Origin: Anaeramoeba ignava BMAN
Taxonomy: Eukaryota > Protista > Anaeramoebae
NCBI GenBank assembly: GCA_028826165.1
Contig: JAPDFW010000068.1
Span: 124,001-188,000, forward strand
Direction of reading: 5' to 3'
Length of the DNA stretch: 64,000 nt
Every line of letters starts with the position of its first letter. Position 1 is the stretch's first letter. Shown in pieces: positions 5,532 to 55,900 of the stretch. Below the pieces are notes generated by a model, which was not told where the DNA came from, ran no database searches, and worked only from the letters and a program-made list of their open reading frames with translations. The translations under genes and the position numbers were made by a program.

Positions 5532-11353
<5,822 letters not shown>

Positions 11354-12391: not shown

Positions 12392-13879
12392 ATGGAAAAT
12401 TATTTAAATTTAGAAAAACTTTCAAATGATTTAAAAAATTTATTTCAAAATCAAAATCAAAATCAAAATCAAAATCAAAATGAAAAAGAAAAAGAAAGTT
12501 ATTTTGATTTTGAAATAATTTGTGAACAAAATAAAACTTCATTTAAAACTCATAAATCAATTCTTTCTTCAAGAAGTCATTATTTTAAATCACTTTTCAG
12601 TTCAAAAATGAAAGAATATCAAGAAAATAAATTAATTCTAAAAGATGTTTCAAGTTCAATTCTATTCTCAATTTTGAATTATCTTTATTCAGGAAAAATT
12701 GAAATTGATTTAGAAAATGCAATTCAAATTTTAGTTTTTTCATCAAAATATTTAATTGATGAATTAATTGATTTTTCTTTCAATTTTATCAAAAAGAATT
12801 TACAATTTGAAACTATTGTTGATATTCTTAAATTATCAGAATCAATGAACTTAAATCAATTATTGGATTATTCTTATCAATTTATTTTGGAAAATTTTAA
12901 TGAATTTATCAAAACTTCATTTTTTCTTGAACTTGAAGAAAATCATTTAAATTTTATTTTATTAAATGATCGAATTTTAACAAGTGAGTTTGAAATTTTA
13001 CAAACAATAATCAAATGGGGAAAACATAAATCAAATATTAATCAAGTAAAGAAAGAAAAAGAAAAAGAAAAAGAAAAATTAAGAATTCAAATTTCAAATA
13101 TCATTCAAAAAATCAGATTTATTGATTTTACAAAAAAAGAACTTGAAGATACTTTGAAAGAAGATTTAATTCCAAATCAAATTTCTGAAAAATTAATTCT
13201 ATTCCAAAAACTTCAAAATCAAAATGATAATGAAAAAGAACTAAATCAATTTATTGAACAAGAAAATTCATTCATTTTCAAATCAAGATTTAAATTTGAA
13301 TCATCAATTATTCGAGAGAAAGAACATTTCAAGAAATTAAAAGAATGGACAAACGATGATGAATTCTTTTCCAAAATAAAATTAGGATTTTCAGCCAAAA
13401 GAGATGGATTTGATTGTAAAAAATGGCATGAAAAATGTGATGAAAAAGGAAAAACATTAGTTATCATCAAAACAAAAGATAATTTTATTTTTGGAGGATT
13501 TACTCAAGTTGGATGGACAAATGATCAATCAAAATGGAGTTTGATTTGGAAAAATCCTGATAGAGGATGGATTTCTGATCCAAATGCATTTATTTTTTCA
13601 TTAAGAAATGATAAACATAATAGAAAACCAGAGAAATTTCCGATTAAGACATCACAAGAAAGATTTGCAATTAAGTATCATTCAAATTATGGACCTGAAT
13701 TTGGAAATTATCATGCAGATTTTTATATAAATTGTGACTTAAAAACTGGACATTCAAATATAGGAAATAGTTACAATATGCCTAATGGAATTACTTACAA
13801 TACAAATGAATCTAAAAGATATTTAACTGGTTCTTATGCTAAGTGGGTTATTGATGAACTTGAAACTTACTTCATTTAA
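12392..13879 (+). CDS. BTB-BACK-TLDc domain protein (intronless)
   Basis: BTB motifs FKTHKSILSSRSHYFKSLF..MKE and LNYLYSG. TLDc motifs FSAKRDGF..WHEKCD.KGKTLVIIKT..FIFGGFT and GPEFG. Confidence 0.9.
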   Translation: MENYLNLEKLSNDLKNLFQNQNQNQNQNQNEKEKESYFDFEIICEQNKTSFKTHKSILSSRSHYFKSLFSSKMKEYQENKLILKDVSSSILFSILNYLYSGKIEIDLENAIQILVFSSKYLIDELIDFSFNFIKKNLQFETIVDILKLSESMNLNQLLDYSYQFILENFNEFIKTSFFLELEENHLNFILLNDRILTSEFEILQTIIKWGKHKSNINQVKKEKEKEKEKLRIQISNIIQKIRFIDFTKKELEDTLKEDLIPNQISEKLILFQKLQNQNDNEKELNQFIEQENSFIFKSRFKFESSIIREKEHFKKLKEWTNDDEFFSKIKLGFSAKRDGFDCKKWHEKCDEKGKTLVIIKTKDNFIFGGFTQVGWTNDQSKWSLIWKNPDRGWISDPNAFIFSLRNDKHNRKPEKFPIKTSQERFAIKYHSNYGPEFGNYHADFYINCDLKTGHSNIGNSYNMPNGITYNTNESKRYLTGSYAKWVIDELETYFI

Positions 13880-13925
13880 AAAATTTTTTTTCTTTTTTTT
13901 TTTTTCATTTTTTTTCTTTTTAAAA

Positions 13926-15690
13926 ATGAATGAAATTTTATTTTTTGGTGCAAATCAATCACCAATTCTTTTCAAAAATGAACCAAATCAAATAACAAAA
14001 CCAATTCAATTTAAATTTGAAAATGAAAATGAAAAACAAATTAAACAAATTTTATCATCAAATTATTCAGTTTTTTTCCTTTTTGAAAATGGAAAAACAA
14101 TCAAATATTCAGAAGATTCAAATCAAAATCCTGAAAAAGAAGAAATCCAAATTGAAAATATTCAAAAAGTAACTGTTGGTAATGAAAATGAAGCTATTTT
14201 AACAATAGAAGGAAATGTATTTGCCAAAGGAGAAGATATTAATCCAAAAAATCCAAAAGAATTTATCAATATTTCATCATTAATTGAAGATTCAAAATGA
14301 TAGAATAATTCAAGATATTGTCTCTGGATCTTTTTCTATTTACTTATTAACTTCAAATCAAAATGTTTACGGAATTGGTTCAAATGATTATGGTCAACTT
14401 GGTTTTGATTCTAAAACACTTGAAATTATAGAAAAACCAATTTTAATGATGAAAAATGTTTCTAAAATATTTTCAGGAAATTCTTCAAATTGTGTTTTTC
14501 TTTTAAATTCAAACCAAGAATTATTTGGATGTGGTGATAATGAATATGGTCAACTTGGATTAGGAGAATCAATAAAAGAAAGAAGAATCAATAAATTAAT
14601 CAAAATCCAAAATATTCCAAAAGGCAAAATAATTGATATTCAATGTGGATATTTTCATTCAGTAATGTTGATTGAAAATCAAAATCAAAATCCAAAAAGA
14701 AAACTTTATTCATGTGGATTTTCTCTATATAATGGACTTGGCAAAAATGAAAATGTAGATAATTATGAATTTACTGAAATCAAATCATCTTTATTTGAAA
14801 ATGAAAATGATGATATTCTTGATTTTTCTGTTGGAAATGATCATACTTTGATTTTAACATCCAATTCAAAATTAATTGGATTTGGGAATAATTCTAATGG
14901 TCAATTAGGAACTGGAAATACAGATAAACAATTAATTCCAATTCAAATTGAACTTCCTAAATTAAGATTTAATGAAGAAATTTCCAATTATCATATTTAT
15001 TCTGGTATTAGTCATTCATTTCTTTATTATTTTCCTTCTTTTTCCAATCTTGAAGAAGATTTGATAAAATTATTTAGAAAAGAAAAGAATTTTGTAATAT
15101 TTCATTTAAAACCAGAAAATGGAGAAATAATCAAAGCTCATAAATTAATATTGAAATATAGATTAAATCAAAATCAAAATGAAATTGAAAAACTTCAAGA
15201 AATTATTTCAAAAATCAATTAAAGAATCAAATGAAATATTTGAAATGATTTATTCAAACAGAATAATAAATCCAAAATTATATTCTGAAATTAAAGAAAT
15301 TATAAATTCAAATGAAAAAATTGAAGAAACAATGAAAAGAATTTATTTAAATGAAAATGAAAAAGATTTTATAATTGAAAGAAAAGAAAAACAATATAAA
15401 TTCCCTAAATTAATATTAATAATGAGAAGTGAATTATATCGAGGAATGTTTTTATATGTAACTGAAGATAAATCAAATAAAGTTACAGATTATAGTGAAT
15501 TAAGTAATAAATCATTTCAAATATTTGAATATTGGATTTATTCAAATCAAATTTATTCAAATCAAAGAAGGAATTAGAAATTACACAAGAAATAATTGAT
15601 GAATTAGAAACTGGAATTGATTATTTAAAATTAAAAATCAAAACAAATCCAAAATTTATTTGATTTATTAATTAACAAATTTAAAATAAT
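13926..15690 (+). CDS. RCC1-repeat + tandem degenerate BTB protein, copy 1 (several frameshifts; pseudogene or assembly error)
   Basis: GSNDYGQLG and VGNDHTLIL RCC1 repeats. IKAHKLILKYR and KLILIMRSELYRGMF BTB motifs. Colinear with copies 2 and 3. Confidence 0.8.
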
Positions 15691-15924
15691 CAAAATTCAA
15701 AATTAAAAAAATTAAAATTAAAATTAAAATTAAAATTAAAATTAAAATCAAAATTAAAATTCAAAATCAAAATCAAAATCAAAATTAAAAATCAAAAGTC
15801 ATTTTTGGAATTTTCAAAAATCAAAAATTAAAAAGGAAAAAATCATTTTTTTTGATTCTCAAATTTAATTTTGATTAAAAAATCAAAAATTAAAAAGAAA
15901 AAAAGAAAAATCAAAGGAAAAAAT

Positions 15925-17650
15925 TGAAGGAAAAAGTAGAAAAAAAATCAAAGTAATAAACGAAAACGCAATCAAGAAAAATAAAAATGAAGAAGGAAAT
16001 AAATTAGATCTTTCATTTAATGAAATTTTTGAAATAAATCATTTAGTTGGATTAAAAAGAATAAAAGAATTAAATTTGGATAATAATAAAATTAGAAAAA
16101 TAAGTGGATTGGATGAATTACCTCAATTAACATCATTGAATCTTTCTTTTAATCAAATAAAAGAAATAGATAATTTGCAAAAATTAACTCAACTTGAAAA
16201 ATTATGTTTGAGTCACAACCAAATTTCTAAAATTCAAGGATTAAATTCTTGTAGAAAAACATTGAAAATTTTCTCAATTAGTGACAATTTAATTCAAAAT
16301 GATCTTCAGGAAATTCTTTGTTATCTAAGAAAATTCACAAGTTTAAAATCATTGAATTTAAAAGGAAATTTAATTGAAAAACTTCCTCAATTTAAATCTT
16401 ATGTTTTGGCTTATTTGAACCAACTAAGTTTTTTGGATTTTAAATTGTTGAAAAAACAAGAAGTAAAAAAAGAAGGAAAAAAAAAATTCTCAAAATAATC
16501 TAATTATAACTTCTTTTTGGTTTTAATGTTAATTTAGTTTATTCAAGCAAGGAAGCAATTTGAAGATGAAATTTTCCAAATTGAGGAACAAGAAAGAATT
16601 TTTGAAAACAAAAAAATCAAGAATAAAGAAACAAAAAAAGAAGTTCAAAAATTAAATCAATTTAATTCAAATATCTCAGAACTATTATTAAATTTAATTG
16701 AAATCCAAGAAGAAATTTTAGATTTTAATTCTCAAAAAGGAATGATTGGAATTTTTAAGGAAAAACTAAATTTAATCAATAATTCTTTTATTCACAAAAT
16801 GATGAAATTGAATTTAGAAAGAAATGAAAAAATGGAACAATTTGAATCAAAAATTCAAGAATTAGGAAAAAATTTTGAGCAAAAAATGAAAAAAATGATT
16901 CAAGAAAAAAAGAAAGAAAATGTTAAAGAAATCCAAAATTCTTTATTAATTTTAGAATTGGATAGAAATTTAAATCAACAAAATTATCAACAAATTCTCT
17001 CAAAAGAAATTAATGAAATTTCAAAAGAAATTGAAAATGTGATTCAATCAATGTAAGAAAAGGAATTAAAAAAAATTAATTTCTTAAAGAAAAAAATATA
17101 TAACTTAAAATATTTATTTTAAATCACAAATAGTTTTTTGGATTTTCTCAATTTTCTCAATGATTTTCAAAATCAAAATCAAAATCAAAATCAAAATCAA
17201 AATCAAAATCAAAATCAAATTCAAAATCAAAATCAAAATCAAAATCAAAATCAAAATCAAAATCAAATTCAAAATCAAAATCAAATTCAAAATCAAAATC
17301 AAATTCAAATTCAAAATCAAAATCAAATTCAAAATCAAAATCAAAATCAAAATGGAAATCAAAATCAAAATCAAAATCAAAATCAAAATCAAATTCAAAA
17401 TCAAATTCAAAATCAAAATCAAATTCAAAATCAAATTCAAATTCAAAATCAAATTCAAAATCAAATTCAAAATCAAATTCAAATTTCAAAAAGTAAACAA
17501 ATTTTGGAAATTGAAAAAACAAAAAAAATATTGATTGAAAAAGAGAAAGAAAAAATGGAAAATATAATCAAAACAATCAAAAAACAGGAAAGGAAAAGAA
17601 ATCGAGGAAATTTAATTTTCATTTTGAATTTGGAACAATTCAAAAAATAA
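15925..17650 (+). CDS. DRC3: Dynein regulatory complex subunit 3-like LRR + coiled-coil protein (start not resolved), 3 exons
   Basis: [52 protein letters not shown] matches the LRRC48/DRC3 pattern. Introns at ~16463-16537 and ~17052-17133. Confidence 0.65.
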
Positions 17651-17697
17651 ATTCCAAAAATTAAAAAATTATTTTTTCATTTTTTTCTTTTTCAAAA

Positions 17698-19475
17698 ATG
17701 AATGAAATTTTATTTTTTGGTGCAAATCAATCACCAAAACTTTTCAAAAATGAACCAAATATAATAACAAAACCAATTCAATTTAAATTTGAAAATGAAA
17801 ATGAAAATGAAAATGAAAAACAAATTAAAAAAATTTCATCAGGAACTTATTCAACAATTTTCCTTTTTAAAAATGGAAAAGCAATAGAATATTTAAATGA
17901 AAATGATTCAAAACAAAATCCTCAAAAAATCCAAATTGAAGAAAATATTCAAAAAGTAACTGTTGGTTTTGAAAATGAAGCTATTTTAACAAAAGAAGGA
18001 AATGTATTTGCCAAAGGAGAAGATATTAATCCAAATAATCCAAATGAATTTATCAATATTTCATCATTAATTGAAGATAAAAATGATAGAATAATTCAAG
18101 ATATTGTTTCTGGAGCTAGTTCAATTTACTTATTAACTTCAAATCAAAATGTTTACGGAATTGGTTCAAATGATTATGGTCAATTTGGTGTTGATTCTAA
18201 AACACTTGAAATTATAAAAAAACCAATTTTAATGATGAAAAATGTTTCTAAAATATTTTCAGGAAATTCTTCAAATTGTGTTTTTCTTTTAAATTCAAAT
18301 CAAGAATTATTTGGATGTGGTGATAATTATTCTGCCCAACTTGGATTAGGAAAATCAAGAAAAGAAGAAACAGAAATGAATGAATTAACCAAAATCCAAA
18401 ATATTCCAAAAGGCAAAATAATTGATATTCAATGTGGAAATTTTTATTCAATAATGTTGATTGAAAATGAAAATGAAAATCCAAAAAGAAAACTTTATTC
18501 ATGTGGAGATTATCGATTTAATGGACTTGGCAAAGAAAAAGAAAAAGAAAATACTTATGAATTTACTGAAATTAAATCATCTTTATTTGAAAATGAAAAT
18601 GATAATATTATTGATTTTTCTGTTGGTGTTTATCATACTTTGATTTTAACATCCAATTCAAAATTAATAGTATTTGGAAATAATTCTAATGGTCAATTAG
18701 GAACTGGAGATATAAATAATCAATTAATTCCAATTCAAATTGAACTTCCTAAATTAAGATTTAATGAAGATATTTCCAATTATCATATTTCTTGTGGAGA
18801 TGACAAATTATTTCTTTATTATTCTCCTTTTTTTCCAATCTTGAAGAAGATTTGATAAAATTATTTAGAAGAAAAGAATTTTGTAATATTTCATTTAAAA
18901 CCGAAAATGGAGAAATAATTGAAGCTCATAAATTAATATTGAAATATAGATTAAATCAAATTGAAAATGAAATTGAAAAACTTAAAGAAATTATTTCAAA
19001 AAAATCAATTAAAGAATCAAATCAAATATTTGAAATGATTTATTCAAACAATTCCAAAATAAATCCAAAATTATATTTTGAAATTAAAGAAATTATAAAT
19101 TCAAATGAAAAAATAGAAGAAACAATGAAAAGAATTTATTTAAATGAAAATGAAAAAGATTTTATAATTGAAAGAAAAGAAAAACAATATAAATTCCCAA
19201 AATTAATATTAATAATGAGAAGTGAATTATATCGAGGAATGTTTTTATCTGTAACAAATGATACTTCTAATAAAGTTACAGATTATAGTGAATTAAGTAA
19301 TAAATCATTTCAAATATTTGAATATTGGATTTATTCAAATCAAATCAAAGAAGGAATTCAAATTACACAAGAAATAATTGATGAATTAGAAACTGGAATT
19401 GATTATTTTCAATTAAATCAAACAAATCCAAATTTATTTGATTTATTAATTAAAAAATTTAATAATCAAAATTAA
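17698..19475 (+). CDS. RCC1-repeat + BTB protein, copy 2 (one frameshift at ~18830 in a poly-T run)
   Basis: ORFs 17698-18855 and 18852-19475 together are colinear with intact copy 3. Confidence 0.85.
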
Positions 19476-19875
19476 AATCAAAATTAAAATCAAAATTAAA
19501 ATTTTTATTGTTTTTAAAAAGAAAAGAAAAAAAAATCTTTTCTTCATAATTAAATCATCTTCTTTCATCATAAATAAAATTCAAATTTGTTATTTTCCTT
19601 TTTTTTTTAATAAAAAATTTCTCAAGTTTTCTATTCATTTTTTTTTTTTGGAATTTTTTTAAATGAAAAAAATAAAAGCATTTCAATAAGGAAATTGACG
19701 TTTCATAATTTAATTTTTTTTAAATTTTGTTCGTTCTCTAAATTTTGTTATTTCATTTTGGAAATCATTAAAAAAAAAAAAAAAGTTTTTCCTTTATTAT
19801 CAACTTTCGAATTAAAATTTTGAAAAGAAAAATGAAAAAATTTAAAAATTGAAATTCATTTTTTCATTTTCAAAA

Positions 19876-21663
19876 ATGAATGAAATTATATTTTTTGGTC
19901 AAAATGTATCTCCAAAACTTTTAAAAAATGAACCAAATATAATAGCAAAACCAATTCAATTTGAAAATGAAAATGAAAATGAAAATGAAAATGAAAAACA
20001 AATTAAACAAATTTTATCATCAAATTATTCAATACTTTTCCTTTTTGAAAATGGGGAATTAATTGAATTTTTAGAAGATGAAGATGATTCAAATCAAAAT
20101 CCTGAAAAGATCGAAATCCAAATTGAAGAAAATATTCAAAAAGTAACTGTTGGTTTTGAAAATGAAGCTATTTTAACAAAAGAAGGAAATGTATTTACCA
20201 AAATTTTTGATATTAATCCAAATAATTCAAAAGAATTTATCAATATTTCATCATTAATTGAAGATAAAAATGATAGAATAATTCAAGATATTGTTTCTGG
20301 ATACAATTCAATTTACTTATTAACTTCAAATCAAAATGCTTATGAATTTAGACCAAATAAAGATGGACAATTTGTTTTTGATTCTAATACACTTAAAGAA
20401 GCAGAAAAACCAATTTTAATGATGAAAAATGTTTCTAAAATATTTTCAGGAAATTCTTCAGATTATGTTTTTCTTTTAAATTCAAATCAAGAATTATTTG
20501 GATCTGGATATAATAATCAAGGCCAACTTGGATTAGGAGAATCAAGAAAAGAAGAAACAAAAATCTATGAATTAACCAAAATCCAAAATATTCCAAAAGG
20601 CAAAATAATTGATATTCAATCTGGATATTTTCATTCAATAATTTTGATTGAAGATCAAAATGAAAATCAAAATCCAAAAAGAAAACTTTATTCATGTGGA
20701 GATTATCGATATAATGGACTTGGCAAAGAAAATGAAAATAATTATGAATTTACTGAAATCAAATCATCTTTATTTGAAAATGATGATAATATTATTGATT
20801 TTTCTGTTGGATATAATCACACTTTGATTTTAACATCCAATTCAAAATTAATAGGATTTGGAGATGATTTATATGGCCAATTAGGAACTGGAGATGCAAA
20901 AAATCAATTAATTCCAATTCAAATTGAACTTCCTAAATTAAGATTTAATGAAGAAATTTCCAATTATCATCTTTATTGTGGTGCTTATCATTCATTTCTT
21001 TATTATTCTCCTCCTTCTTTTTCCAATCTTGAAGAAGATTTGATAAAATTATTTGAAAGAAAAGAATTTTGCAATATTTCATTTAAAACCGAAAATGGAG
21101 AAATAATCAAAGCTCATAAATTAATATTGAAATATAGATTAAATCAAAATCAAAATCAAATTGAAAAACTTCAAGAAATTATTTCAAAAAAATCAATTAA
21201 AGAATCAAATCAAATATTTGAAATGATTTATTCAAACAATCCCAAAATAAATCCAAAATTATATTTTGAAATTAAAGAAATTATAAATTCAAATGAAAAA
21301 ATTGAAGAAACAATGAAAAGAATTTATTTAAATGAAAATGAAAATGAAAAAGATTTTATAATTGAAAGAAAAGAAAAACAATATAAATTTCCCAAATTAA
21401 TATTAATAATGAGAAGTGAATTATATCGAGGAATGTTTTTATCTGTTACAGAAGATAAATCTAATAAAGTTACAGATTATAGTGAATTAAGTAATAAATC
21501 ATTTCAAATATTTGAATATTGGATTTATTCAAATCAAATTAAAGAAGAAATTCAAATTACACAAGAAATAATTGATGAATTAGAAACTGGAATTGATTAT
21601 TTTCAATTAAATCAAACAAATCCAAATTTATTTGATTTATTAATTAACAAATTTAATAATTAA
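19876..21663 (+). CDS. RCC1-repeat + BTB protein, copy 3 (intact, intronless)
   Basis: Single ORF with RCC1 repeats followed by BTB motifs. Confidence 0.9.
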   Translation: MNEIIFFGQNVSPKLLKNEPNIIAKPIQFENENENENENEKQIKQILSSNYSILFLFENGELIEFLEDEDDSNQNPEKIEIQIEENIQKVTVGFENEAILTKEGNVFTKIFDINPNNSKEFINISSLIEDKNDRIIQDIVSGYNSIYLLTSNQNAYEFRPNKDGQFVFDSNTLKEAEKPILMMKNVSKIFSGNSSDYVFLLNSNQELFGSGYNNQGQLGLGESRKEETKIYELTKIQNIPKGKIIDIQSGYFHSIILIEDQNENQNPKRKLYSCGDYRYNGLGKENENNYEFTEIKSSLFENDDNIIDFSVGYNHTLILTSNSKLIGFGDDLYGQLGTGDAKNQLIPIQIELPKLRFNEEISNYHLYCGAYHSFLYYSPPSFSNLEEDLIKLFERKEFCNISFKTENGEIIKAHKLILKYRLNQNQNQIEKLQEIISKKSIKESNQIFEMIYSNNPKINPKLYFEIKEIINSNEKIEETMKRIYLNENENEKDFIIERKEKQYKFPKLILIMRSELYRGMFLSVTEDKSNKVTDYSELSNKSFQIFEYWIYSNQIKEEIQITQEIIDELETGIDYFQLNQTNPNLFDLLINKFNN

Positions 21664-21929
21664 AATTAAAATTAAAATTAAAATTAAAATTAAAATTAAA
21701 TTCAAAATTAAATTTAATAATTAAATTTAAAATTAAAATTAAAATCAAAATTAAAATTAAAATTAAAATTAAAATTAAAATTTAAATTAAAATTAAAATT
21801 AAAATTAAAATTAAAATTAAAATCAAAATCAAAATTAAAATCAAAATTAATATCAAAATTAAAATTAAAATTAAAATTAAAATTAAAAAAATAAAAAAAT
21901 AAAAAATCATTTTTTCATTTTCTAATCAA

Positions 21930-24070: not shown

Positions 24071-26455
24071 TTAATTTTCTTTTAATTTTTCTTGTTGAAT
24101 TTGATTTAGCAAACTTTCTGCTGTCAAAATTTCTGTTGTTCCATAAATTAAATTTTGAGTAATTTTTTTAATTTCATCAAATTCAATTAATGTTCCACCT
24201 CCAACAATAAAAACAATAAATTCTTGATATTCAGTTAATTTTGGATTGAAATCTTCAAAATGGAAAACATCAAAACAATTTGGAATATCTTCTCTTGCTT
24301 TTTCAGATTCAATAATTGATGATATTAGTTTTGAAACATAAGATTTCAAGTTATTTTTCTTGATATTTTTTGATCTTTGTTGGATTTTTTGGAAAGTATT
24401 ATTTGGATCAAGAATTGAGTATTTTTTCTTTTTAAAGGATTCAGTAAAATGCTTTATAAAACTTAAATCATCTTGTTGATTGTCGATTTTTTTAAGAAAG
24501 ATTTGTAAGTTATCCAAATTTGTTTGTTTTTTAGCGAAAAAATGAATGAGAATCAGTCGAATTTTATCTATTCTTTTTATTTCTTGAGATTCTAATAACT
24601 TCATAATTTCTTCATCTTCTGTTTGTGTTTGTTTTTCTGAGCTCATGATCATATTTTCAAGTTCGTAAAATTCATCGAGTTTTCTTGATTGAATTTGTGA
24701 CATAATTGAAGTGCAAATATTCGAGTGTTTATCAAGCTCTTTTTTATTCTTTTGGAGATTTGGAAGTTCCTGAATTGTGTTTGTTAATTCTTTTGTTGTT
24801 TCAAAGAAATTGACTTGCGATAAATTTGCAAGTTTATCTCTTTTATTTTTATAATTTTGAGTTTTTTCTTCGATTTTGTTCACAATTTCTGGAAACGGTA
24901 AATCATTATTAGCTTTCCAAAAATCATCGTCTTCATGAAGACGATATTGCAATGTTTTGAATTTGCTATCTGAATTTTGTGCTTGATTTGAATTGCTATT
25001 AAATAATTCATCTTTCATGTCTTTTTCTTCTTTTTCAATTTTTAAATTCACAATATTATCATTCACTTTTAATGTATCATAAACAAGTGCATTATAAATC
25101 CAAGAATGATGAAGAATTAAATTAAAATCCACAAATCTATCCAATATTAACAATAATGATTTCTGGTTATTTTTCATTATGTTTTCTTTTAATAGTTTGA
25201 ATTCCTTTGATTTTTTTAAATTTTCTTGAATTCTTTGATTCAATTGATTTCCAATAACACTTGCTGCACTTTCTCGTGAGCATAGTATTACAGGTGTTGT
25301 GTTTAGTAAAGAAACTACTGAGAAAAGTCCATCTATAATTGAATCAATTGTTTTTTTTGTTTTTTCAGTGTTTGATGTGTTTAGATATATTTTTGAATAT
25401 GAATTTTTAATATCAAGTGTGAAAATTTTTTCTTCAATTGAAATGAATTTTAAATAATGTTCGTAAATTTTGTTCATTTTATCACTTTGATTTGTTTCAT
25501 ATATTCCTTTTGCAAAATGATAAAGTAATTTTTGTGGGATGTATGGAATAAAATTTAGATAATATTGATCGTATAAGCCTAATGAGATATCCTATAATTT
25601 TATAAATAATTTTATAAATAATTTTATAAATAATTTTATAAATAATTTTATAAATAATTTTATATTTAACTTTATAAATAATTTTATAAATAATTTTATA
25701 AATAATTTTATAAATAATATTATAATTAATTTTATATATAATTTTATAAATAATTTTATAAATAATTTTATAATTAATTTTATAAATAATTTTATAATTA
25801 ATTTTATAATTAATTTTATAATTAATTTTATAAATAATTTTATATATAATTTTATAAATAATTTTATAATTAATTTTATAAATAATTTTATAATTAATTT
25901 TATAAATAATTTTATAAATAATTTTATAATTAATTTTATAAATAATTTTATATATAATTTTATAAATAATTTTATAAATAATTTTATAAATAATTTTATA
26001 AATAATTTTATAAATAATTTTATAATTAATTTTATATTTAATTTTATAAATAATTTTATAATTAATTTTATAAATAATTATATAATTAATTTTATAAATA
26101 ATTTTATAAATAATTTTATAAATAATTTTATAAATAATTTTATAAATAAAGCTTGATTTACTTTTGTTATTATTTCAATATTTTTTAATGAAGATTTGCA
26201 AATATAAATTGCTGGTGAATCTGGAATTGATTCACGAGGTTGATTAATTTGTAATTGTAAAATAATCCCTAATTCTTTTAAATCTTTTATATTAAACAAT
26301 ATTGAAAGAATTTTATGAGTAAATTTATCATAAATTAAAATTTTCCAAATTTCATTCCATCTTTCATTTTCTTGATTTTCTGTTTGATTTAATTCTTTAT
26401 TCAAATTAAAAATTTTTAATAATGCTTTTTTTTGTAAATTTTGTAAAGAAAACAT
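24071..26455 (-). CDS. SLY1: Sec1/Munc18 family protein, Sly1-like, 2 exons
   Basis: WKILIYDK, RESIPDSPAIY, LLILDRFVDF..LHHSWIYNALVYD, LDKHSNI and FIVGGGTLIE motifs. Intron 26161-25592. Confidence 0.85.
25594..26148. repeat. 12-bp minisatellite (ATAATTTTATAA) filling the SLY1 intron
   Basis: Visible tandem unit. Confidence 0.9.
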
Positions 26456-31021: not shown

Positions 31022-32935
31022 TTAATTTTGATAAATAAACCAATTTGGATTTGGAGTTAATCCTTTAGCAACTCCACAAACAGCAATTCTTCCATTTCCT
31101 CCTTTTCCACCTGAAGAATTAATTCCTGGATGAGATGAAAGAGGATAACCAATTCCTTTTTCACCACCTTTAGCTTCAATTGTTCCGTTATTGAAAATTA
31201 ATTTTGAAATAAATAAAATACTTCCTCCACTTCCTCCTCCTCCTCCTGAACCAAATGTTCCATTAATTCCATCTTCACCTTTTTCTCCATTACAATAAAT
31301 TTCACCATTATTAATAATAGTATTTGCTTCTAATAATAAAGCTCCTCCTCCATTTCCTCCTTTTCCCTTTGTTTGTCCATTACTATATGGATGACCAGAA
31401 CCACCACCTGATCCTAAATAAAGTTGTGTTATTTTTTCATCTCCATAAATTTCTCCTCCTTTTCCTCCTGGATGATTTCCTCCTTGCCATCTATTTGGTT
31501 CAGAATCTTCACCTTTAGTTCCATATCCTCCTCCACCTCCTCCAATACTTCCAAAACTACTACAACCCAAACCAGCTCCACCACCTCCTTTATTTGCATC
31601 TTGAAGATCTCCTCCTCTTCCATTGAATGATTCTCCTTGTTTTGCTTTTCCATTTGTGCATTGTGGAACTGCATCACCACCTCGATATCCTTTTCCTGAT
31701 AAATCAATTTTACCTCCTTTTTCAATAATTATCATTGATTTTGCTTTGATTTTCAATACTCCTCCTGAATTTCCATCCCATGCTTTAACTGTAAGAACTC
31801 CTCCATTTCTTATTATTAAATTATTACAATTAATTTCTCCATTCATTTCTTGTGTGTTTGTGATTTCAATTGTATCTTGTTGTTTCAAAATTGAATCAAG
31901 ATCTTGAAAAAATTTGTAAAAAAAATCAATATCTTCATCTTTAATTTCCATTCCTGATATTTTTTGGATAACAGAAAATTTTTTTTTTTCATTTTCAATT
32001 TCAATTTTCTTTTCATTTTCAAGTTTTTCTTGAAATATTTTCTTTTCATTTTCCACTTTTTCAATTTCAATTTTCTTTTCATTTTCAAGTTTTTCAATTT
32101 CAATTTTCTTTTCATTTTCAAGTTTTTCTTGTAATTTTTTCATTTCATCAACTTTATCACTTTCTTTCTTTGAAATTTGAAAAAGGAAATGAGTAGGAAG
32201 ATATTCTAATTCTTGAATTTTTTTGAAATCTTCTTTTTTAAAAATATCAATATTAATTTTAGAAAGAAATTGATTAAATAATTGTTTTAATTTTTGATTT
32301 TTGATTTTTTCATCAACATTTTGAATTCTTTGATTTAAATATTTATGAAGAACATCAAAAAATTCAATTCCAATATTTTCTTGATTTTTGGATTTATTTG
32401 AAATAATTTGAATAATTTGTTGTTGAGATAAATGAAGAAATTCAGATTTTTTGATTAAATTTTCGAAGTTTTGTTCAATAAATTCCAAACAAGAATCATT
32501 TAATTTTAATGAATTTATTGATTTATTATCTGAAAGAATTTGGAAAACATTTTCTTCATTGATTTTTTGAATGATTTGGTTTTCAAGAAAATTAGATAAT
32601 AAATCAAGTTGAAATAAAATTGAAGCTTTGAAAAATTGAAGTAAATCTTGATCATTGAATTGAATTTGACTTGAATAAATATAAAGAAGAATATTTGAGA
32701 TTGTTTGATTATTAAATTCAAAAAAAGAGATTTCATTTGATTCATTTTCTTTAAAAAAATTAGTAAAATAAGGAGAACGAAAACTTAAAATTGATTTATG
32801 AGAAGGAAATTGATAAGAATCAGTTTTAATAATAAAATCAGGAAAATTATGAGAAGATTTTAATAAATTTGTAAATTGTTGAATTAAATTTTGTGTGAAT
32901 TGATTGTTGTTATTATTATTATTATTTTCTTCCAT
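31022..32935 (-). CDS. BTB-BACK + coiled coil + glycine-rich domain protein, copy A (intronless)
   Basis: BTB motif FPSHKSILSFRSPYF. C-terminal TVKAWDGNSGGVL..IDLSGKGYRGG and GGGGG blocks. Confidence 0.88.
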   Translation of the reverse strand: MEENNNNNNNNQFTQNLIQQFTNLLKSSHNFPDFIIKTDSYQFPSHKSILSFRSPYFTNFFKENESNEISFFEFNNQTISNILLYIYSSQIQFNDQDLLQFFKASILFQLDLLSNFLENQIIQKINEENVFQILSDNKSINSLKLNDSCLEFIEQNFENLIKKSEFLHLSQQQIIQIISNKSKNQENIGIEFFDVLHKYLNQRIQNVDEKIKNQKLKQLFNQFLSKINIDIFKKEDFKKIQELEYLPTHFLFQISKKESDKVDEMKKLQEKLENEKKIEIEKLENEKKIEIEKVENEKKIFQEKLENEKKIEIENEKKKFSVIQKISGMEIKDEDIDFFYKFFQDLDSILKQQDTIEITNTQEMNGEINCNNLIIRNGGVLTVKAWDGNSGGVLKIKAKSMIIIEKGGKIDLSGKGYRGGDAVPQCTNGKAKQGESFNGRGGDLQDANKGGGGAGLGCSSFGSIGGGGGGYGTKGEDSEPNRWQGGNHPGGKGGEIYGDEKITQLYLGSGGGSGHPYSNGQTKGKGGNGGGALLLEANTIINNGEIYCNGEKGEDGINGTFGSGGGGGSGGSILFISKLIFNNGTIEAKGGEKGIGYPLSSHPGINSSGGKGGNGRIAVCGVAKGLTPNPNWFIYQN

Positions 32936-33099: not shown

Positions 33100-36000
33100 T
33101 TAATTTTGATTTTTTGTTTTTTTGGATTGGGAAGTAATCTGATCAAATAATTTTTCCATTTCAAATTCAGAAAGAACAAAACAATCATTAATCAAATGAT
33201 TAATTTGTTGATTATATTCAATTTCAGTATATTTAACACATTGAAATTTTGAAATATTGTTTGAAACATGATGAAATCTTCTCCTTTTTGCCCAATTAAT
33301 AAGATGATTTTCTTTTGTAAAATTAGGAAGACCTCTAATATTTGAAAGATCTGAAAGAAATACAACAATATAAGGAATTGCAGGCAAATCAATTTGACTA
33401 AATTCTTTACGCAAAATTTCATAATTTCGTTTTGGATCCAATTTTTGATCCAATTCATGATATTTTGCAAGTATATTTTTGGGTACTTTTTTCCATGTTT
33501 CGGATAAATATTCAATTTTCATACTTTGGAAACTTGAAATAAAACAAAAGGAGTCATTCAAGTTTCTCATTTTAAAAAGAACCAAAGCAGTCTTGATAAA
33601 TTTAGTGAGAATTTTTGCTCTTGTTGTTAAATCCTTTTGAATCAAAATTTGTGTGCAAATCCAATCAGAAAGAAAATTAAACCATCGAGAAAAGGCATTA
33701 GTTGCTTGAGTTTCAACTTTTTCGTTGATGTCTCGAGTAGCAAAAGTAAGATTCAACAAATCTTTCGTTGTGATTTGGGAAAATTTTTCATAAGTGATTC
33801 TCGTAATTTGTTTTGCCAGTTCAACACAAGAAACAAATAATAGTGGCGGTTTTTTTTGACTGTTTTTTGCTAGATCAAATTTTTTCTTATCTGTACATAA
33901 ACCACACAAAATAATGCAGTTATCGGAAGTATTAATTTTGGATAAAGAGTCTTCTTTTTCTGGTCTTTTCTCTTCAGTCACGTTTTGTTTTTCTAAAGAA
34001 AGCATGCTCTTCAAAGTTTCTCCTTTGTTCCGTATTTTCTTTTCTGGATATTTCATAAGATAACTTTCTGTGAATTTAATAATCATTTCTTTCACTTCAT
34101 TTGGAATATTTTTAGAATGGAATTGTGCGATTCGAATTAAAATATCAACAACCATAACTTGTATTTCTTCTCGTGCTTCTTTTTCAATTATTTCCCTTGT
34201 TTTTGGATCCTTTTTAGGAACAAGAAACCGATCAAACAAGTTGATCGCCAGTTTGTAATGTGTTGAATAACTTGGAAGTACATTTAACAAGAAATCCACA
34301 AAATCATATGAATAGCCTTCTTTTGTTGTTAAAATTTCTAATGCTTTATTGAGTGTTGTTGATTTTATTTTCAGATATTCATTTACATTTTCATTTTGAT
34401 TATTTTGATTTTCATAAACAATATTTTTCATTTGAATTACACTTTCTTCCCAAAAAAGGAGATGATCTAAAATATTTCAAAATCAAAATCAAAATTAAAT
34501 TAAAATTAAAATTAAAATCAAAATCAAAATTTACTAAATGATAATTCTTCTTCATTTTCTTCATTTTCTTCATTTTCATTTTCTTCAAAATTGTTTTTTT
34601 GAATATCAACTAATTCAAGTTGCGAATTATCTTCAATTTTTTGTTCTAAAAAATTCTGATCCAAATCTAACAAATAATTTTGTTCCAGTTTATTATTCTG
34701 TTGATTTTGCTTTTTTTCTTCATAATTATGACTTAATTTTTTAAAAATAAGTTTATTAGGATTTCCAATTTGATAAAAGTTGCAAATATTAAAAATCAAT
34801 TTGCCAACTTTGATCCAAGGATTCAAAACAATCCGAAGAACACAATCCACAACTTGAGTTTTTGTAACTTTATCAGAAATTGAGTAATTAATGGAAATCC
34901 TTATTGGGCGAGGTTGAAATACAAGGAACATAAAAGCATTGATACTCTATAAATAATTTTAATTTATATATAAATTTGAATATAAATATATATATTTATA
35001 TATATATTTTTTTTTCTTTTGGTGATGATAAAAAATTATATACATAATTGCTTGGGAAATGATTGTAAATTTGCGTATTTGAATAAACATTCAAATATTT
35101 CCCAAATACTTCATTTGCTTCTTCGTTTTGTTTTTGGAAATCATCTAATGGACAAAAAACACCAATTTCTAAATTATGATTATTAACTGATTTTTGAATT
35201 TGTCGAGAGTCTATCCTTAGAAACAGCCCAAATCTTTTTGAATTATTTACAACTTCTTTCATCTGTTTCAAAATTGATGAAATTTTCGTATCAGTTGTAA
35301 TTTTCTTCCATTTAAAACTTGTAAATTTTTCATTGTTTGGGTAAATAATATAAATTTGTTGAGGCGGTTTTTTGCGAATTTGAACAATATATCCAGAGAA
35401 TTTATCCAAAAAGACATCATCTTCAATAAATTGCCCTTGATATATTGAATTTACATCCAAATTCTGGTTTTTTTGGAACGGAATTTCTGTTGAAAAAAGT
35501 TGGAAATCTTCGTTTTCAAGTGAAAAATATTTGGCAAATTCCATCACCATTTCTTTTGCTCTATATTTTTTATCAACAACAAAGCGTGTTTTAATTCCAT
35601 CAGGATCATAAATATAATTTTTATTTTCTTCGAAATATATGTTTTTGATCGATATTTTTTCTTTCAAATTTAATCGAGAACTTTTTTTTTGTGTTTTCTC
35701 TTCCATTTTTGTGTTTAAATTTTGCTTATTTTCAATTAAAGATGAAAAGTTTGAAATGATATTTAAAATATTCTCACTTTTGGTAAGTGTTTTTAGATTG
35801 AATCTATCTGCAATTTGTTGGTTATTCTGTGGGAAAATTTGTGATATAATATTTGTTGGGATTTGATCAAAAATTTCTTGTAATTTTGTTTGCAATCTTG
35901 AATAAGATATTTCAATATCTTGGGTTATTTCTTCAATTATTAGATTTATTAATATAATTGATAAACTGCGCATTTTAGCAGATATTGATTCATCTTCTAG

Positions 36001-49957: not shown

Positions 49958-52900
49958 TTATTTTTTAATCTCTCTTGAATATAAAGAAGTAAACTTATTA
50001 GGAACAGCAACAAAATATTTAGCAATAGAAATATCAAATCTTGATTTATATTCTTTAGGGGAAATTATAGTAGGAATTTTCCCTTTACCACCTCCAACTA
50101 AACCAGTTCTTTTAACCCAGGATTCTAAATGTTTATCCCAAGTATATTGACGCAAATAATCAATAATCCCAATGATAATTTCATTGCTTTTTTCATCAAT
50201 TCCAACAAGAAGTGAATAATCCATGATTTTTAATGAAGATAAAAAAGCTGAATCATTGAGTATCGCAACCATCATCGAATTCTTCGATTCAACATCACAA
50301 AAAAATGGTGTTCCATAAATAAAATCTTTTAGATTTTCATCTTGAAAAAATAGTTGATTTGGAAATTGTTCTCTTTGAGTAAATGATTTCTTTTTTGAAT
50401 TAATTTTGATTTGTTCATTTGAATTTTCATTTGAATTTTCGTTTGAGTTTTCATTGGAATTTTCATTAATTATTTTTTGATGTTTTCGATTTGGAATATT
50501 TTGAGGTTCAGTTTTTTCAAAATTTTCAGAATTTTGAGAATTTTCAATAAAATCAAGCGATTCAAAAGATTCAGAATATTGCTCGTTTGTCTTAATAAGT
50601 TGGTTATGAGGAATCTCAATATAACGGCTTCTTTTAGAGCCTTTTAAATCAAAAATCCTTGATACATTGCGTCCATAAAAGAGATTTTCCATGAGAACTA
50701 ATGTTTGTGAATTTTCCTTAATATTAGGTGTTGATACAGTGATTTTAAAAAGACCGAGGATTTTAACCAAAACTGAAGGTAATTTTTGGAACAAATTTTT
50801 CTCGGCATATTGGAAATAACTTGGTGCAAGTAAATTCAATGATTCGAATTCTGTTTTGGATATTTTTTTGAAAATAAAACGATCATCCAAAGTTTTGACA
50901 AATAATGATCCAGATTTTCCACCTTTTGTTTTCCATCTTTTGCATCTTGAGATTGACTGGAAAAAATACTGATCACTCAAATAGGGATCAATGCAACAAT
51001 ATCTTCGGAGAGCTTCAAATTGCTTTGGATAATAAATAGTGCAGGAAAATTCGCTTTTCAATTCGGGATAAGCATCTGAAATGGTAATGTGATTTTGATC
51101 CAAATCTTGAAGAACCAAAGAAATGAGTTTTGGATCGTTAACTTGTGACAAATTCGGTGCTGGATTCCCGAGACTGCGAAGCTGCTTGTAGTATTCTACC
51201 GATGACAGAACGCTTCCAATGATTGTGCTTGGTTCGTCATCGTAAATGCAGTATAATCGATTATTTAGACTTTCAGGAACAAATATCCATGAACGAGATT
51301 CGTGAAAAATTTCATCTTCAAAGTTTTTTTGATTTTCGGGAAAATCTTTAATTTCGGGAATTTTTGGATCGTTTTTATTTTGTGGACTTTTCGACTCGCA
51401 AACAGGCGATTTACTTTGATTAGAAAGTGGAACGCTACGTGGTGTTTTAACAATTGGACTTGAGGATAGTGCCATTTGGATGTTGGTTTCTAGTGGCTCC
51501 TCAATGCTTTGTTTGTTGTGAGTCTCAAAGGAATGGTGAGAAGAGTTTGTTTTGGGAATGATTTTCAAGTTCAACTTGTCGTCAAACATTATGGATTCGA
51601 TCTGTGAGTGATCTTGAGCCATTAAAAAAAATTGAGCATGAATAAATTTAATGCGAATTTTTGGAGTAGGTATGGTATTGGCAACTGGTGTTACATTAGT
51701 ATTCAAATTTTGATTTGTATTTTGATTTGTATTTAAATTTGTATTTAAATTTGTGTTTGTATTTGTATTTGTATTTGAAATATCCAATGCTTCTTTTTCA
51801 GATGGATTTTCGTTTGATTTCAAAATGGATGTTGATTGCGATATCACTATTTTCTTGATCTTCTCTACAAATCCTGTAAGTAAAATATACCACTGCATGA
51901 CTTTTTTGAACAATTCTTGCTTTTGTCTATTTAACTGAAAAATATCTAATTTTTGAATCTCAAATTTTCTTAGTTTTTCTGGGAAAGTTGTTTCTTCTTG
52001 GATGACTTTATTCAGTTGAGAAACTGCCTCATTAAGCAATTCTTCTGTGCTCTTATTGATTTTGCGTTCTTTGCCAGTTTTTAGGAATTGGGCTTGGATT
52101 TGCATGTTTATAAAATTGATAAAATGATCCAATATATATCTCACATATTCAAATACATTTGAAGACATTTTGATGAGGATGTTGCGAATTTTCTCAAGAA
52201 AAGCAAATGTGTTACTCTTTTTGAATTGGGTTGTGTTTCCAAGACAAACTATTCTCATTGAGTTAATATCGTTATATTCAAAACAAGCAATCATTTTTCC
52301 AAAAGCAAAATATCTAAAAAAATTTGAATGCATAAGATGATTGCACAAGGGTTTTGAAGAAATATCCGCGCGAACCGCCACGTTGCGCTGATAAAACCAC
52401 AGCTCAAGAAATTTGGAAAATGAATAAAATTGCGAAAATTGGGTGAGTTCTCTTGATCCTGTTACTTTTTGACAAATTGGACAATAAGCCCAAGTTTGGA
52501 TCGAATTTTCAGCTCCAGGAATCCATGTCTGTGGAGTCTGTAATTGAACGGAAATTGTTAGGCATCCGTTGTTGTGGATGTAGTTGCGAAATATTAATCC
52601 ATGCAAATAGGATTTTTCATTTAAATTTCGTGTATTTTGTGTGTTGATTTGTCCTGTCAATTTTAATTCTTGTTTTTTTGAGAAGCATTCTTTCATCAAG
52701 AACTCACCCAATGTTATATCCCGATTCCCATAGAACTGAACACTGCGAGTATTCAACTCGATTCTTTTGAACTGGTATTTGCGGGAGTCGATAATAACAG
52801 CCATAAAATTAAGAAGAGAATAAACATTTTTTTTGTGGCGAATTCTTAATAGATATTCTTGAGTTGATAATTTTTCAAGTTCCTTTTGTGTTTCTTGTTG

Positions 52901-55900
52901 AATGATTTTTTGGGTCTGTTGCTCTTCCTTTTGCTCTTCAAATTCCTCTGCGATTTTGTTGGGTTTGAAATGCATGTTTGTGATTTCCAAAAAATCATTT
53001 TCTGCAATTTGAGTTTCATTTATAATATTTGATTTGGATTGATTTTGCTGATTTAAAAATTCATTTTGATTTGAGTCACAAAAAGCGGAATTTTCACAGA
53101 AATTAACATTTGGCGAGATTGATAGGATTTTTTTCTTTGCAGATTCTTTGTCGATATTTTCATTGTTATCTTCATTGAAAAGAACCAAAGCTTGGAGATC
53201 GTGGAGAGTATGCGATTCAAATCGAGAATTCCACAATGAAAAAACAGCTAATTGGAAAATCCTTTTCAATTCGGTGAGTTTTGCCTTGGTTTCTCCTCTT
53301 ATTATAATTGAAATTAATGACAAAGGGTTTGTTTCGTCTTGTATTGATTTGATCTTGATAATTGTTCTTTTTCTGAGTTTGATTGGTTGATCTTCCTTTT
53401 GATCAAGGAAGTATTTCTGGTTAATTTCATTGACTTCATTTTCAACTGAATCCTCCTCAATATGATTGATTTCTGCGGAAAATTCCTTGCAGATTCCAAG
53501 GTTGATTTGGTTTTTGTCTTCATCAAATTCGTCAATAATTTCAGCACCTGTTATTTTGGATATTTTTTTCAAAACACTCGATTTGACATTTGAAACAATT
53601 GCGATTCCGTGGTTGTGAATTTTTTCCTGAACAGATCGTGAAACGGAACCGCTGACTAAAATTACATTTGGTTTCAAACTTATTATTTTTTTTAAAAAGG
53701 GTTCTAGTGATTTCTGCTCGTTATTAATTGCAGAAATAAGCGAATAAATACGAAATTTATTGTCTGTTTTTTTCTTTCTTTTTTCGTATTGATTATTTTG
53801 ATATTGCTTCTGTTTTTGGTGAAATTTGACATTTAAAAAATCAATGTTTCCTTGAATCAATAGAATTTTTGCATTTTTAATAAGTTTTTCTGTGCTTCTG
53901 TGATTGAAATTTCTTGAGAAAATGATTCCTTCAACCAATTCGGAAAAATTACTATTTTTTCCTGGAATTTTTTTGATTTTAATGCATCTAAGAATATTTT
54001 TAGGGATTTCATTAGATTTTATTTGCATTGATTGTGCTTGTTGTTTTCTATTGAATAAAAAATCACTTAATAAATCACATGTTTTTTCTGCAAGAGATAT
54101 TAAACGTGGTGTCCATTTTTCAACATCTATTGATTTAGCTTTCATTAATTGCTCAATTACTGAAACTATATGCAATTTTGTTATTTGCTGAATTTGTTTA
54201 AGATGATTGTTTTCCAAATCGAGAGTATTTTGTGTGATTTTATCAGGATGAATATAATTTGGAACCTGAATAAACGCTATTAATTGATAAATAATAATTT
54301 AAAAATATATATAAATATATAAATATTTTTTTTTTGATATATATGATATTTTTGTTTACTTCGATTTTTTTGATTTTGTAATTTAAGTGACAAAGGTAAA
54401 AAATAGCGAAATCTGGAAGTCTGAATTTTTTCAATATGTATATCTTTTTCTTGTTTGATTTTGAATAATTTTAGTTGATTTTTGAGATCCAATAACGAAG
54501 AATTTTGTATTTCCTTTTCAATTTCGTTTTGAATTTTATTTTGAATAAATTCATTTTGAATAATTTCCCTTTCAAGTTCTTTTTCAATTTCCTTTTCAAT
54601 TTCTTTTTCTTGAGATTTATTTTTTTTCCATTTGAATTTGAATTTTGATTTTGATTTTGATTTTGATTCTCTTAATTTTTTGCGACAAAAAGAACAAACA
54701 TAAAGATGGTAATCAAAATTATATTTTTTTGGAGATAAAATTTTCAAACAATTTGTGCAATAATGTTTATGACAAATATGGCAAAGTTTTAATGAAGAAA
54801 TATTTTGGAATTGTTTTTTACATTTTGAACAGTAAAATTTCTTCTGTTTTTGGAAAAATTTTTTGGAAAGATGAGATCTTTCGTAATTTGAGATGAGATC
54901 TACAATTGATTGGAAAGAATGTATGTTTGAAATTTTCACTGAAGAAGATTGATTTTCTGATTCAGATAATGTTTTTTCTTCAACAAAAGGAAGAAAGTGG
55001 TGAGTTGATTTTTGAATTTTTTTAGATAATTCTGTGAATTTATATAATTTTTCATTTTCTTTTAAATTTGAATTTTGATTTTGATTTATATTTTGATTTT
55101 TATTTTTATTTTGATTATTTTTATTATTTTGATTTATATTTTGATTTTTATTTTTATTTTTATTTTGATTTTCATTTTGATTTTTATTTTGATTTTTATT
55201 TTTATTTTTATTTTTATTTTTATTTTTTATTTTGATTATTTTGGTTATTTTGATTTTGATTTTGATTTTGATTTTGATTTTGATTTTGATTTTGATTTTG
55301 ATTTTGATTATTTTGATTTATATTTTGATTTATATTTTGATTTTGATTTTGATTATTTTGGTTTTGATTTATATTTTCATTTATTATTTTGATTATTTTG
55401 ATTATTTTGATTATTTTGGTTATTTTGGTTATTTTGGTTATTTTGATTATTTTGGTTATTTTGATTATTTTGATTTATATTTTGATTATTTTGATTATTT
55501 TGATTATTTTCATTTTGATTATTTTGATTATTTTGATTATTTTGGTTATTTTGGTTTTCATTTTCATTTTCATTTTCATTTATATTTTGATTATTTTCAT
55601 TTATATTTTGATTATTTTTATTTTGGTTATTTTGATTATTTTGATTTATATTTTGATTTATATTTTGATTTATATTTTGATTTTTATTTTTATTTTGGCT
55701 TTTATTTTGATTATTTTCATTTTGATTATTTTGATTATTTTGGTTTTGATTTATATTTTGATTTATATTTTGATTTTGGTTTATATTTTGATTTATATTT
55801 TGATTTTGGTTTTGATTCTGATTTATATTTTGGTTATTTTGGTTATTTTGGTTATTTTGGTTATTTTGATTATTTTGATTTTGATTTATATTTTGATTTT

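Follow-up and report, generated by a model that had tools for sequence, protein, structure and literature searches.

A large, recombining RCC1-BTB gene family with hypervariable propeller loops in Anaeramoeba ignava

Introduction

Do neighbouring RCC1-BTB genes of Anaeramoeba ignava BMAN belong to a diversified repertoire of recognition proteins? The question is raised by a 64-kb stretch of contig JAPDFW010000068.1 (assembly GCA_028826165.1; positions 124,001 to 188,000 of the forward strand), referred to here as the window. Three copies of a gene encoding an RCC1-like propeller and two BTB domains (RCC1-BTB-BTB) start at positions 13926, 17698 and 19876 of the window, which holds no others. 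A prediction made from the letters of the window had described them as an array with hypervariable, shuffled propeller loops, forming an antibody-like library of ubiquitin-ligase substrate receptors. We found that the three copies belong to a very large family whose variation is concentrated in loops of the propeller. The explanation that we consider best, and on balance probable, is a germline repertoire of intracellular recognition proteins with a putative binding face on the RCC1 propeller. The literature searched contained no description of this family ('RCC1' in a Bathycoccus paper denotes strains); RCC1, BTB and cullin are not mentioned in the main text of the genome paper (PMC11550330), and its supplements give such names in tables only.

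Materials and methods

The assembly of A. ignava BMAN comprises 147 contigs and 42,843,398 bases. Protein variation was analysed in a sample of 110 family members, and DNA tests were performed on 43 open copies from loci L001-L060; both samples are skewed toward the copies closest to copy 3. Recurrence by chance is unlikely for the multi-base alleles used in the four-gamete test. Selection at individual codons was assessed with a composite-likelihood site model of our own.

Results and discussion

The three copies

The three copies and the parts of the intact one are as follows.

13926..15693, + strand: copy 1, RCC1-BTB-BTB, broken as assembled
17698..19475, + strand: copy 2, RCC1-BTB-BTB, one frameshift
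19876..21663, + strand: copy 3, intact intronless open reading frame (ORF) of 595 amino acids (aa), RCC1 propeller and two BTB domains
19876..21009, + strand: copy 3, RCC1-like seven-blade propeller, aa 1-378
Copy 3, hypervariable A-B loops: aa 50, 94-95, 143-144, 194-196, 251-252, 313-314, 370-371
Copy 3, hypervariable C-D loops: aa 9-12, 111, 160-163, 212-215, 276-279, 330-333
21010..21660, + strand: copy 3, tandem BTB-BTB tail, aa 379-595, near-invariant in the family
21427..21471, + strand: copy 3, alpha3-beta4 loop of the second BTB domain (BTB2), aa 518-532, site of the Cullin-3 (Cul3)-binding phi-x-E motif, non-canonical

Copy 1 is disrupted by about ten frameshifts (the first near 14294, others near 15078, 15114 and 15210, and six at 15554-15683). 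It contains no nonsense substitutions and its divergence from the consensus (0.061) is that of intact copies (0.059 +/- 0.009); its lesions are therefore young or are long-read errors. In copy 2 a T run at ~18828 is short by 4 bases, which separates the propeller from the BTB tail and is either a real lesion or a long-read error. The description of the locus as an array of three thus needs qualification: the copies are present, but copies 1 and 2 are frameshifted and an unrelated DRC3-like gene lies between them, so that the array is not contiguous.

Amino-acid differences among the copies are found at 25 of the 34 top-face loop positions (74%; loops defined by motif), compared with 56 of 281 other propeller positions (20%) and 12 of 188 BTB positions (6%). 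The original prediction of near-identical frameworks and BTB halves with differences at the loops is borne out by these figures, and the loop variants listed in it are present in the sequence. It had also proposed mosaic sharing, and this too was recovered, the informative sites falling into 78 runs versus 95 expected (p=0.002). Distances within the trio (p-distance 0.060-0.077) are smaller than those separating it from the family (0.081-0.093). A set of 17 rare alleles is common to copies 1 and 2, against a background of ~5. Several of the shared motifs are rare among the 110 family proteins (KQILSSNYS 1, VYGIGSNDYGQ 1, NCVF 1, GNNSNGQ 0 and VGFENE 3 occurrences) and thus point to local exchange; GYFHS (13/110) and CGDYR (10/110), cited alongside them, are commoner alleles and weaker evidence.

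Family size and architecture

Family members were counted genome-wide with two independent DNA words. A 20-mer from the RCC1 propeller was found at 1,147 places and a 26-mer from the BTB region at 1,354, with 0 control matches in each case. At more than 1,100 copies, the scale is larger than the original prediction had assumed. The family amounts to ~8-9% of the gene count (14,837 genes, with 2.13 introns per gene; PMC11550330, Table S1) and to 2.1-2.4 Mb, or ~5-6% of the DNA. The copies form small head-to-tail arrays dispersed over many contigs, and in each unit an intronless ORF is preceded by a T-rich leader of ~30 bases and followed by an (AAAATY)n run. Pairwise protein identity is 83.7 +/- 1.5%; copies differ by ~8% at the DNA level and have different flanks.

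The 30 copies that come first on contig 1 comprise 15 that are open over their visible extent, 13 that are disrupted almost exclusively by indels, and two fragments with BTB only. The copy number, together with the broken copies and fragments, identifies a lineage-specific expansion with birth and death. All close protein matches are from A. ignava, as are all ten of the full-length relatives checked from a search of 1.8 billion proteins (10/10). Older, divergent RCC1-BTB-BTB genes with 30-40% identity in the tail are also present in this organism.

Other arrangements were noted. Fragments carrying BTB2 without a propeller are found at loci L046 and L053. Three adjacent copies on contig 1 (L042-L044, 667394-673827) each carry several deletions of 16-53 bases, whereas lesions elsewhere are indels of 1-2 bases; these three are possibly a truly decaying array. 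In some A. ignava genes armadillo-type repeats are fused ahead of the RCC1-BTB-BTB module (ARM-RCC1-BTB).

Distribution of variation

The propeller (aa 1-378) is recognized by the Pfam RCC1/WD40_RLD models and was modelled with a predicted local distance difference test (pLDDT) score of mostly 80-95; its top Foldseek matches are RCC1, HERC2 and RPGR. Two BTB stretches follow, as confirmed by the model of the tail, giving the RCBTB-type order of an RCC1-like domain (RLD) with a pair of BTB domains after it.

An entropy of at least 2.5 bits is reached at 26 positions, all within the propeller and none in the BTB tail, and 22 of the 26 lie in the A-B turn or C-D loop of a blade. In an alignment with UVR8 these loop sites coincide with its GWRHT and GW positions, which line one face of the UVR8 propeller. 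Judged from this alignment, hypervariability is confined largely to one propeller face, in agreement with what had been predicted. Mean entropy is 2.54 bits in the top-face loops and 0.41 bits in the B-C turns of the opposite face. The residues at the variable sites include 18% Tyr, 7.5% Phe and 1.4% Trp, with 5% Ile and Leu together, and 108 of the 110 proteins have a unique loop signature.

Selection on the loops

In the 43 ORFs the motif-defined top-face codons gave a pN (nonsynonymous diversity) of 0.47 and a pS (synonymous diversity) of 0.23, a ratio of 2.10 (confidence interval 1.69-2.68); pS there is five times the gene-wide value. The ratio is 0.85 for the strands and 0.34 for the BTB tail, which is under purifying selection. 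With a single synonymous rate, allowing omega>1 in the site model gained 80-87 log units and selected 33-37 codons, 0 of them in BTB.

Neutral simulations were matched to the observed amino-acid heterozygosity of 0.73. They gave Ile+Leu frequencies of ~0.13-0.33 (0.05 observed) and same-residue synonymous differences of ~0.10-0.21 (0.055 observed); the latter figure was reproduced by a simulation with omega=5. GC content is 26% at codon positions 1-2 and 8% at position 3, and the loop composition lies several standard deviations (SD) from AT-driven neutrality. Since the neutral simulations miss the observed composition, selection on residue identity is needed, and diversifying selection is its likeliest form.

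Exchange between copies

For the multi-base alleles, all four gametes were observed in 43 of 45 pairs, and r2 is at the level of independence (0.025-0.03) beyond ~25 bases. Three gene segments yield star-like trees that lie 72-80 of a possible 80 Robinson-Foulds units apart. In approximately unbiased tests each segment rejects the trees of the others, although such tests favour overfitted trees. Distance tests resembling the pairwise homoplasy index were only marginal (p=0.05 for framework sites, 0.002 for all sites) because linkage is lost beyond ~25 nt. Array neighbours are closer to each other (0.054 vs 0.084) and differ in blocks; in close pairs the differing tracts are spread over the whole gene and are not confined to the loops. 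The family is one recombining pool with extra local exchange. The four-gamete result, the decay of r2, the discordant segment trees and the runs in the trio together uphold the segmental exchange proposed at the outset.

BTB-BTB tail

The tail, folded with divergent relatives, was modelled with a pLDDT of 90. Its best fold matches are the tethered POZ dimers Miz1-BCL6 and Miz1-Nac1, and the model suggests an intramolecular, single-chain BTB pseudo-dimer. Such an arrangement would prevent cross-dimerization among ~1,000 paralogues. The loop of BTB2 can be aligned with KBTBD4's Cul3 loop and is nearly invariant (eight variants cover 108 of the 110 proteins); the first BTB domain (BTB1) has no Cul3 loop. 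With the phi-x-E register moved by one, BTB2 reads V-T-E in 76 of the 110 proteins. In the neighbouring BTB-BACK-TLDc protein the motif is canonical (M-K-E) and a BACK domain is present. Cullin genes occupy roughly 7-8 loci in the genome. The same BTB-BTB tail was also found behind a Ras/Roc GTPase domain in other A. ignava proteins. A C-terminal CaaX-like box (CLIF, CSIF, CFIF) is present in about 9% of family members and suggests that these are prenylated; the intact copy 3 does not carry it.

Interpretation and alternative explanations

If the family is a recognition repertoire, its history and use may be pictured as follows. A compact gene unit (leader, intronless ORF, repeat tail) would have been amplified into hundreds of small dispersed arrays, the amplification itself being seen in the genome. 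Frequent short-tract gene conversion and unequal exchange, the probable mechanism of the exchange observed, would homogenize the scaffold and BTB tail, and the same exchange would reshuffle loop alleles between copies. Diversifying selection, for which the loop data largely argue, would keep ~35 codons of one face variable and rich in Tyr, Asp, Glu, Ser and Phe. By analogy with structures of the RCC1 family, the variable face would bind a target, and the constant BTB pseudo-dimer would pass it on for ubiquitination, most likely by a cullin-RING ligase. We infer this last hand-over with slightly better than even confidence. Analogy makes foreign proteins the likeliest targets, whether from viruses, intracellular bacteria or symbionts, a proposal for which the chances appear evenly balanced. 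A bolder form, adaptive-like intracellular immunity, would have gene conversion reshuffle more than 1,000 intact and broken genes within the time scale of a culture, with only some expressed or induced at once and products marking viral, intracellular-bacterial or sulfate-reducing-symbiont proteins for ubiquitination; it is improbable.

Several observations weigh against a repertoire of Cul3 adaptors kept variable by selection. When per-site synonymous rates were left free, the gain from omega>1 was 1.3-1.7 log-likelihood units and not significant, so that the site test leaves selection indistinguishable from neutral variation that is locally deeper or faster; a pooled likelihood gave an omega of 1.1-1.2 with the synonymous rate raised at the loops. 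Positive selection in the recognition domain alone is indicated by pN/pS, the constant-rate model and the simulations, and does not reach significance with synonymous rates left free per site or per group. Around half of the copies in the small sample are broken as assembled. No member of the homogenized family is among the matches listed from the EukProt transcriptome, where two divergent relatives are present; this gap may reflect low or inducible expression, or near-identical transcripts failing to assemble. In the strict register from the conserved Met, as defined in KLHL3 (PMC3616122), the BTB2 motif reads T-E-D with an invariant Asp. No 3-box or BACK helices were found after BTB2: there is no BACK match and, by our reading of its helices, the model ends at BTB helices 5-6. 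Given these features and the lack of a Cul3 loop in BTB1, the predicted Cul3 recruitment is not established. Cul3 use is plausible by analogy with RCBTB1 and IBTK, Cul3 adaptors of the same domain order (PMC4974088, PMC4447969), and is the weakest link of the repertoire explanation.

The same repertoire might instead have a tail that does not recruit Cul3 and serves another effector or sequesters the target, with the CaaX members directed to membranes. The missing 3-box and the T-E-D reading fit this alternative, as do the resemblance of the tail to tethered Miz1-BCL6 and Miz1-Nac1 heterodimers, its occurrence on Ras/Roc-BTB-BTB proteins and the CLIF-like endings of ~9% of members. The near-invariant BTB2 loop, alignable with the Cul3 loop of KBTBD4, argues the other way, and IBTK retains weak Cul3 binding when its 3-box is missing (PMC4447969). 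We regard this alternative as unlikely, yet as the most serious of those considered.

Explanations that dispense with recognition were also weighed. Selfish or drift amplification, by slippage and recombination at the AAAATY runs or by retroposition, with selection on the exposed loops relaxed instead of positive and most copies silent, would suit intronless copies where the genome average is 2.13 introns per gene, their short leader and simple-repeat tail, the reverse transcriptases of the genome, the many broken copies, the absence of transcriptome entries and the ambiguous site model. Against it are purifying selection on BTB (0.34), the lack of variability in exposed opposite-face turns (0.41 vs 2.54 bits) and a loop composition several SD from AT-driven neutrality. 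Nor was a poly-A tail observed, no search having been made for target-site duplications; we judge this explanation quite improbable. About eight long reverse-transcriptase ORFs occur in the genome, none of those listed being on this contig.

A targeted mutator of the loops, either adenine mutagenesis like that of diversity-generating retroelements (DGRs) or programmed conversion of a few expressed loci by cassettes, could account for the synonymous diversity being 2-3 times higher in or next to the loops, with the many broken but undiverged copies as donors. DGR mutagenesis converts AAY to NNY. At the variable sites, however, third positions swap A and T freely (GAA, CAA, AGA and AAA are common), and DGR-type adenine mutagenesis is rejected on these codon spectra. 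Third-position GC is 8-9% at the loops and 6% elsewhere, close pairs differ over the whole gene, and neither a template copy nor an adjacent reverse transcriptase is present in the window, which makes a mutator very unlikely. Nor did the codon spectra yield evidence of somatic assembly or targeted mutation; the label of the original prediction, likening the family to antibodies and variable lymphocyte receptors (VLRs), fits the pattern of variation only. An origin of family size and mosaicism in assembly artefacts (uncollapsed haplotypes, chimeric polishing) can hardly be credited. Many broken copies do have indels only, as is typical of long-read error, but the ~8% DNA divergence, the different flanks on many contigs and the 108 distinct loop signatures in 110 proteins speak against it, as does the way in which variation tracks protein structure.

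Neighbouring features

The features surrounding the three copies are listed below.

12392..13879, + strand: BTB-BACK-TLDc gene, ending 46 bases before copy 1
13880..13925, + strand: 46-base gap from the BTB-BACK-TLDc stop to the copy 1 ATG, with T-rich TCATT leader
15694..15790, + strand: (AAAATY)n simple-repeat tail after copy 1
~15989..17650, + strand: leucine-rich repeat (LRR)/coiled-coil gene, DRC3/LRRC48-like by its LRR exon, apparently intron-containing, unrelated to the family
17651..17697, + strand: 47-base gap with TCATT leader, from the DRC3-like gene to copy 2
21664..21885, + strand: (AAAATY)n tail after copy 3

Many ATGs are closely preceded by a TCATT-plus-T-run motif (13880-13925, 17651-17697 and 19850-19875, and upstream of 2586, 12392 and 32935); we take it to resemble the Trichomonas initiator element. 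AAAATY-type runs follow most family copies, yet make up 6% of the window overall. The TCATT leader and AAAATY tail were considered as family-specific signals and dropped because both are present at other genes.

BTB-BACK-TLDc genes, of which there are at least 341 copies, form another large family whose members show 70-78% identity, and stand directly upstream of several RCC1-BTB copies. At 31022-32935 (-) and 60664-62631 (+) lies an inverted pair of BTB-BACK genes, 95% identical in their glycine-rich C-terminal domain and with seven copies in the genome. Other genes of the window encode a papain-family protease (10063-11353), a Sec1-family protein (24071-25477), a RasGEF (33100-34431), a Fab1/PIKfyve-like kinase (49958-54217) and EF-1 alpha (58798-59847).

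Comparison with known systems

The family resembles antibodies, VLRs, trypanosome variant surface glycoproteins and DGRs in combining a constant scaffold, clustered Tyr-rich variable loops and segment exchange. Unlike them, it offers no evidence that copies are assembled somatically, that there is an expression site or template repeat, or that a mutator is at work; the diversity observed is germline and fits selection with conversion. UVR8, the second RLD of HERC2 and RCC1 have the same fold (Foldseek E about 1e-22), and the variable A. ignava positions align with the UVR8 GWRHT and GW positions; their surfaces are conserved for one partner, whereas those of the A. ignava family are its most variable part.

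By domain order alone, an RCC1-like propeller with two BTB domains also likens the family to RCBTB1/RCBTB2, IBTK and S. pombe Btb1. RCBTB1/RCBTB2 and IBTK have been described as Cul3 substrate adaptors (PMC4974088, PMC4447969). The RCBTB/IBTK type is represented by one or two conserved genes, in contrast to more than 1,100 in A. ignava, and IBTK carries a 3-box after BTB2 (PMC4447969), where the A. ignava proteins end.

The closest precedent is provided by the F-box and MATH-BTB repertoires of Caenorhabditis, large families of cullin adaptors with fast birth and death; the A. ignava family would work in a similar way, but its membership among Cul3 adaptors is not established. Positive selection is reported in the substrate-binding and not the cullin-binding domain of the nematode proteins, which were proposed to degrade foreign proteins (summarized in PMC4334554). 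The A. ignava family differs in its recognition fold, in being ~84% identical, star-like and freely recombining, in occupying 8-9% of genes, and in belonging to a free-living protist.

In an anaerobic protist that bears symbionts, a single family of recognition type accounts for ~8-9% of the gene number and ~5-6% of the DNA; it constitutes a natural library of putative binders built on the RCC1 propeller. If the proposed reading is true, diversified ubiquitin-adaptor immunity would reach beyond nematodes and plants into a deep-branching metamonad and would use a new scaffold there, and non-self recognition inside a free-living protist cell would become testable with a defined set of genes.

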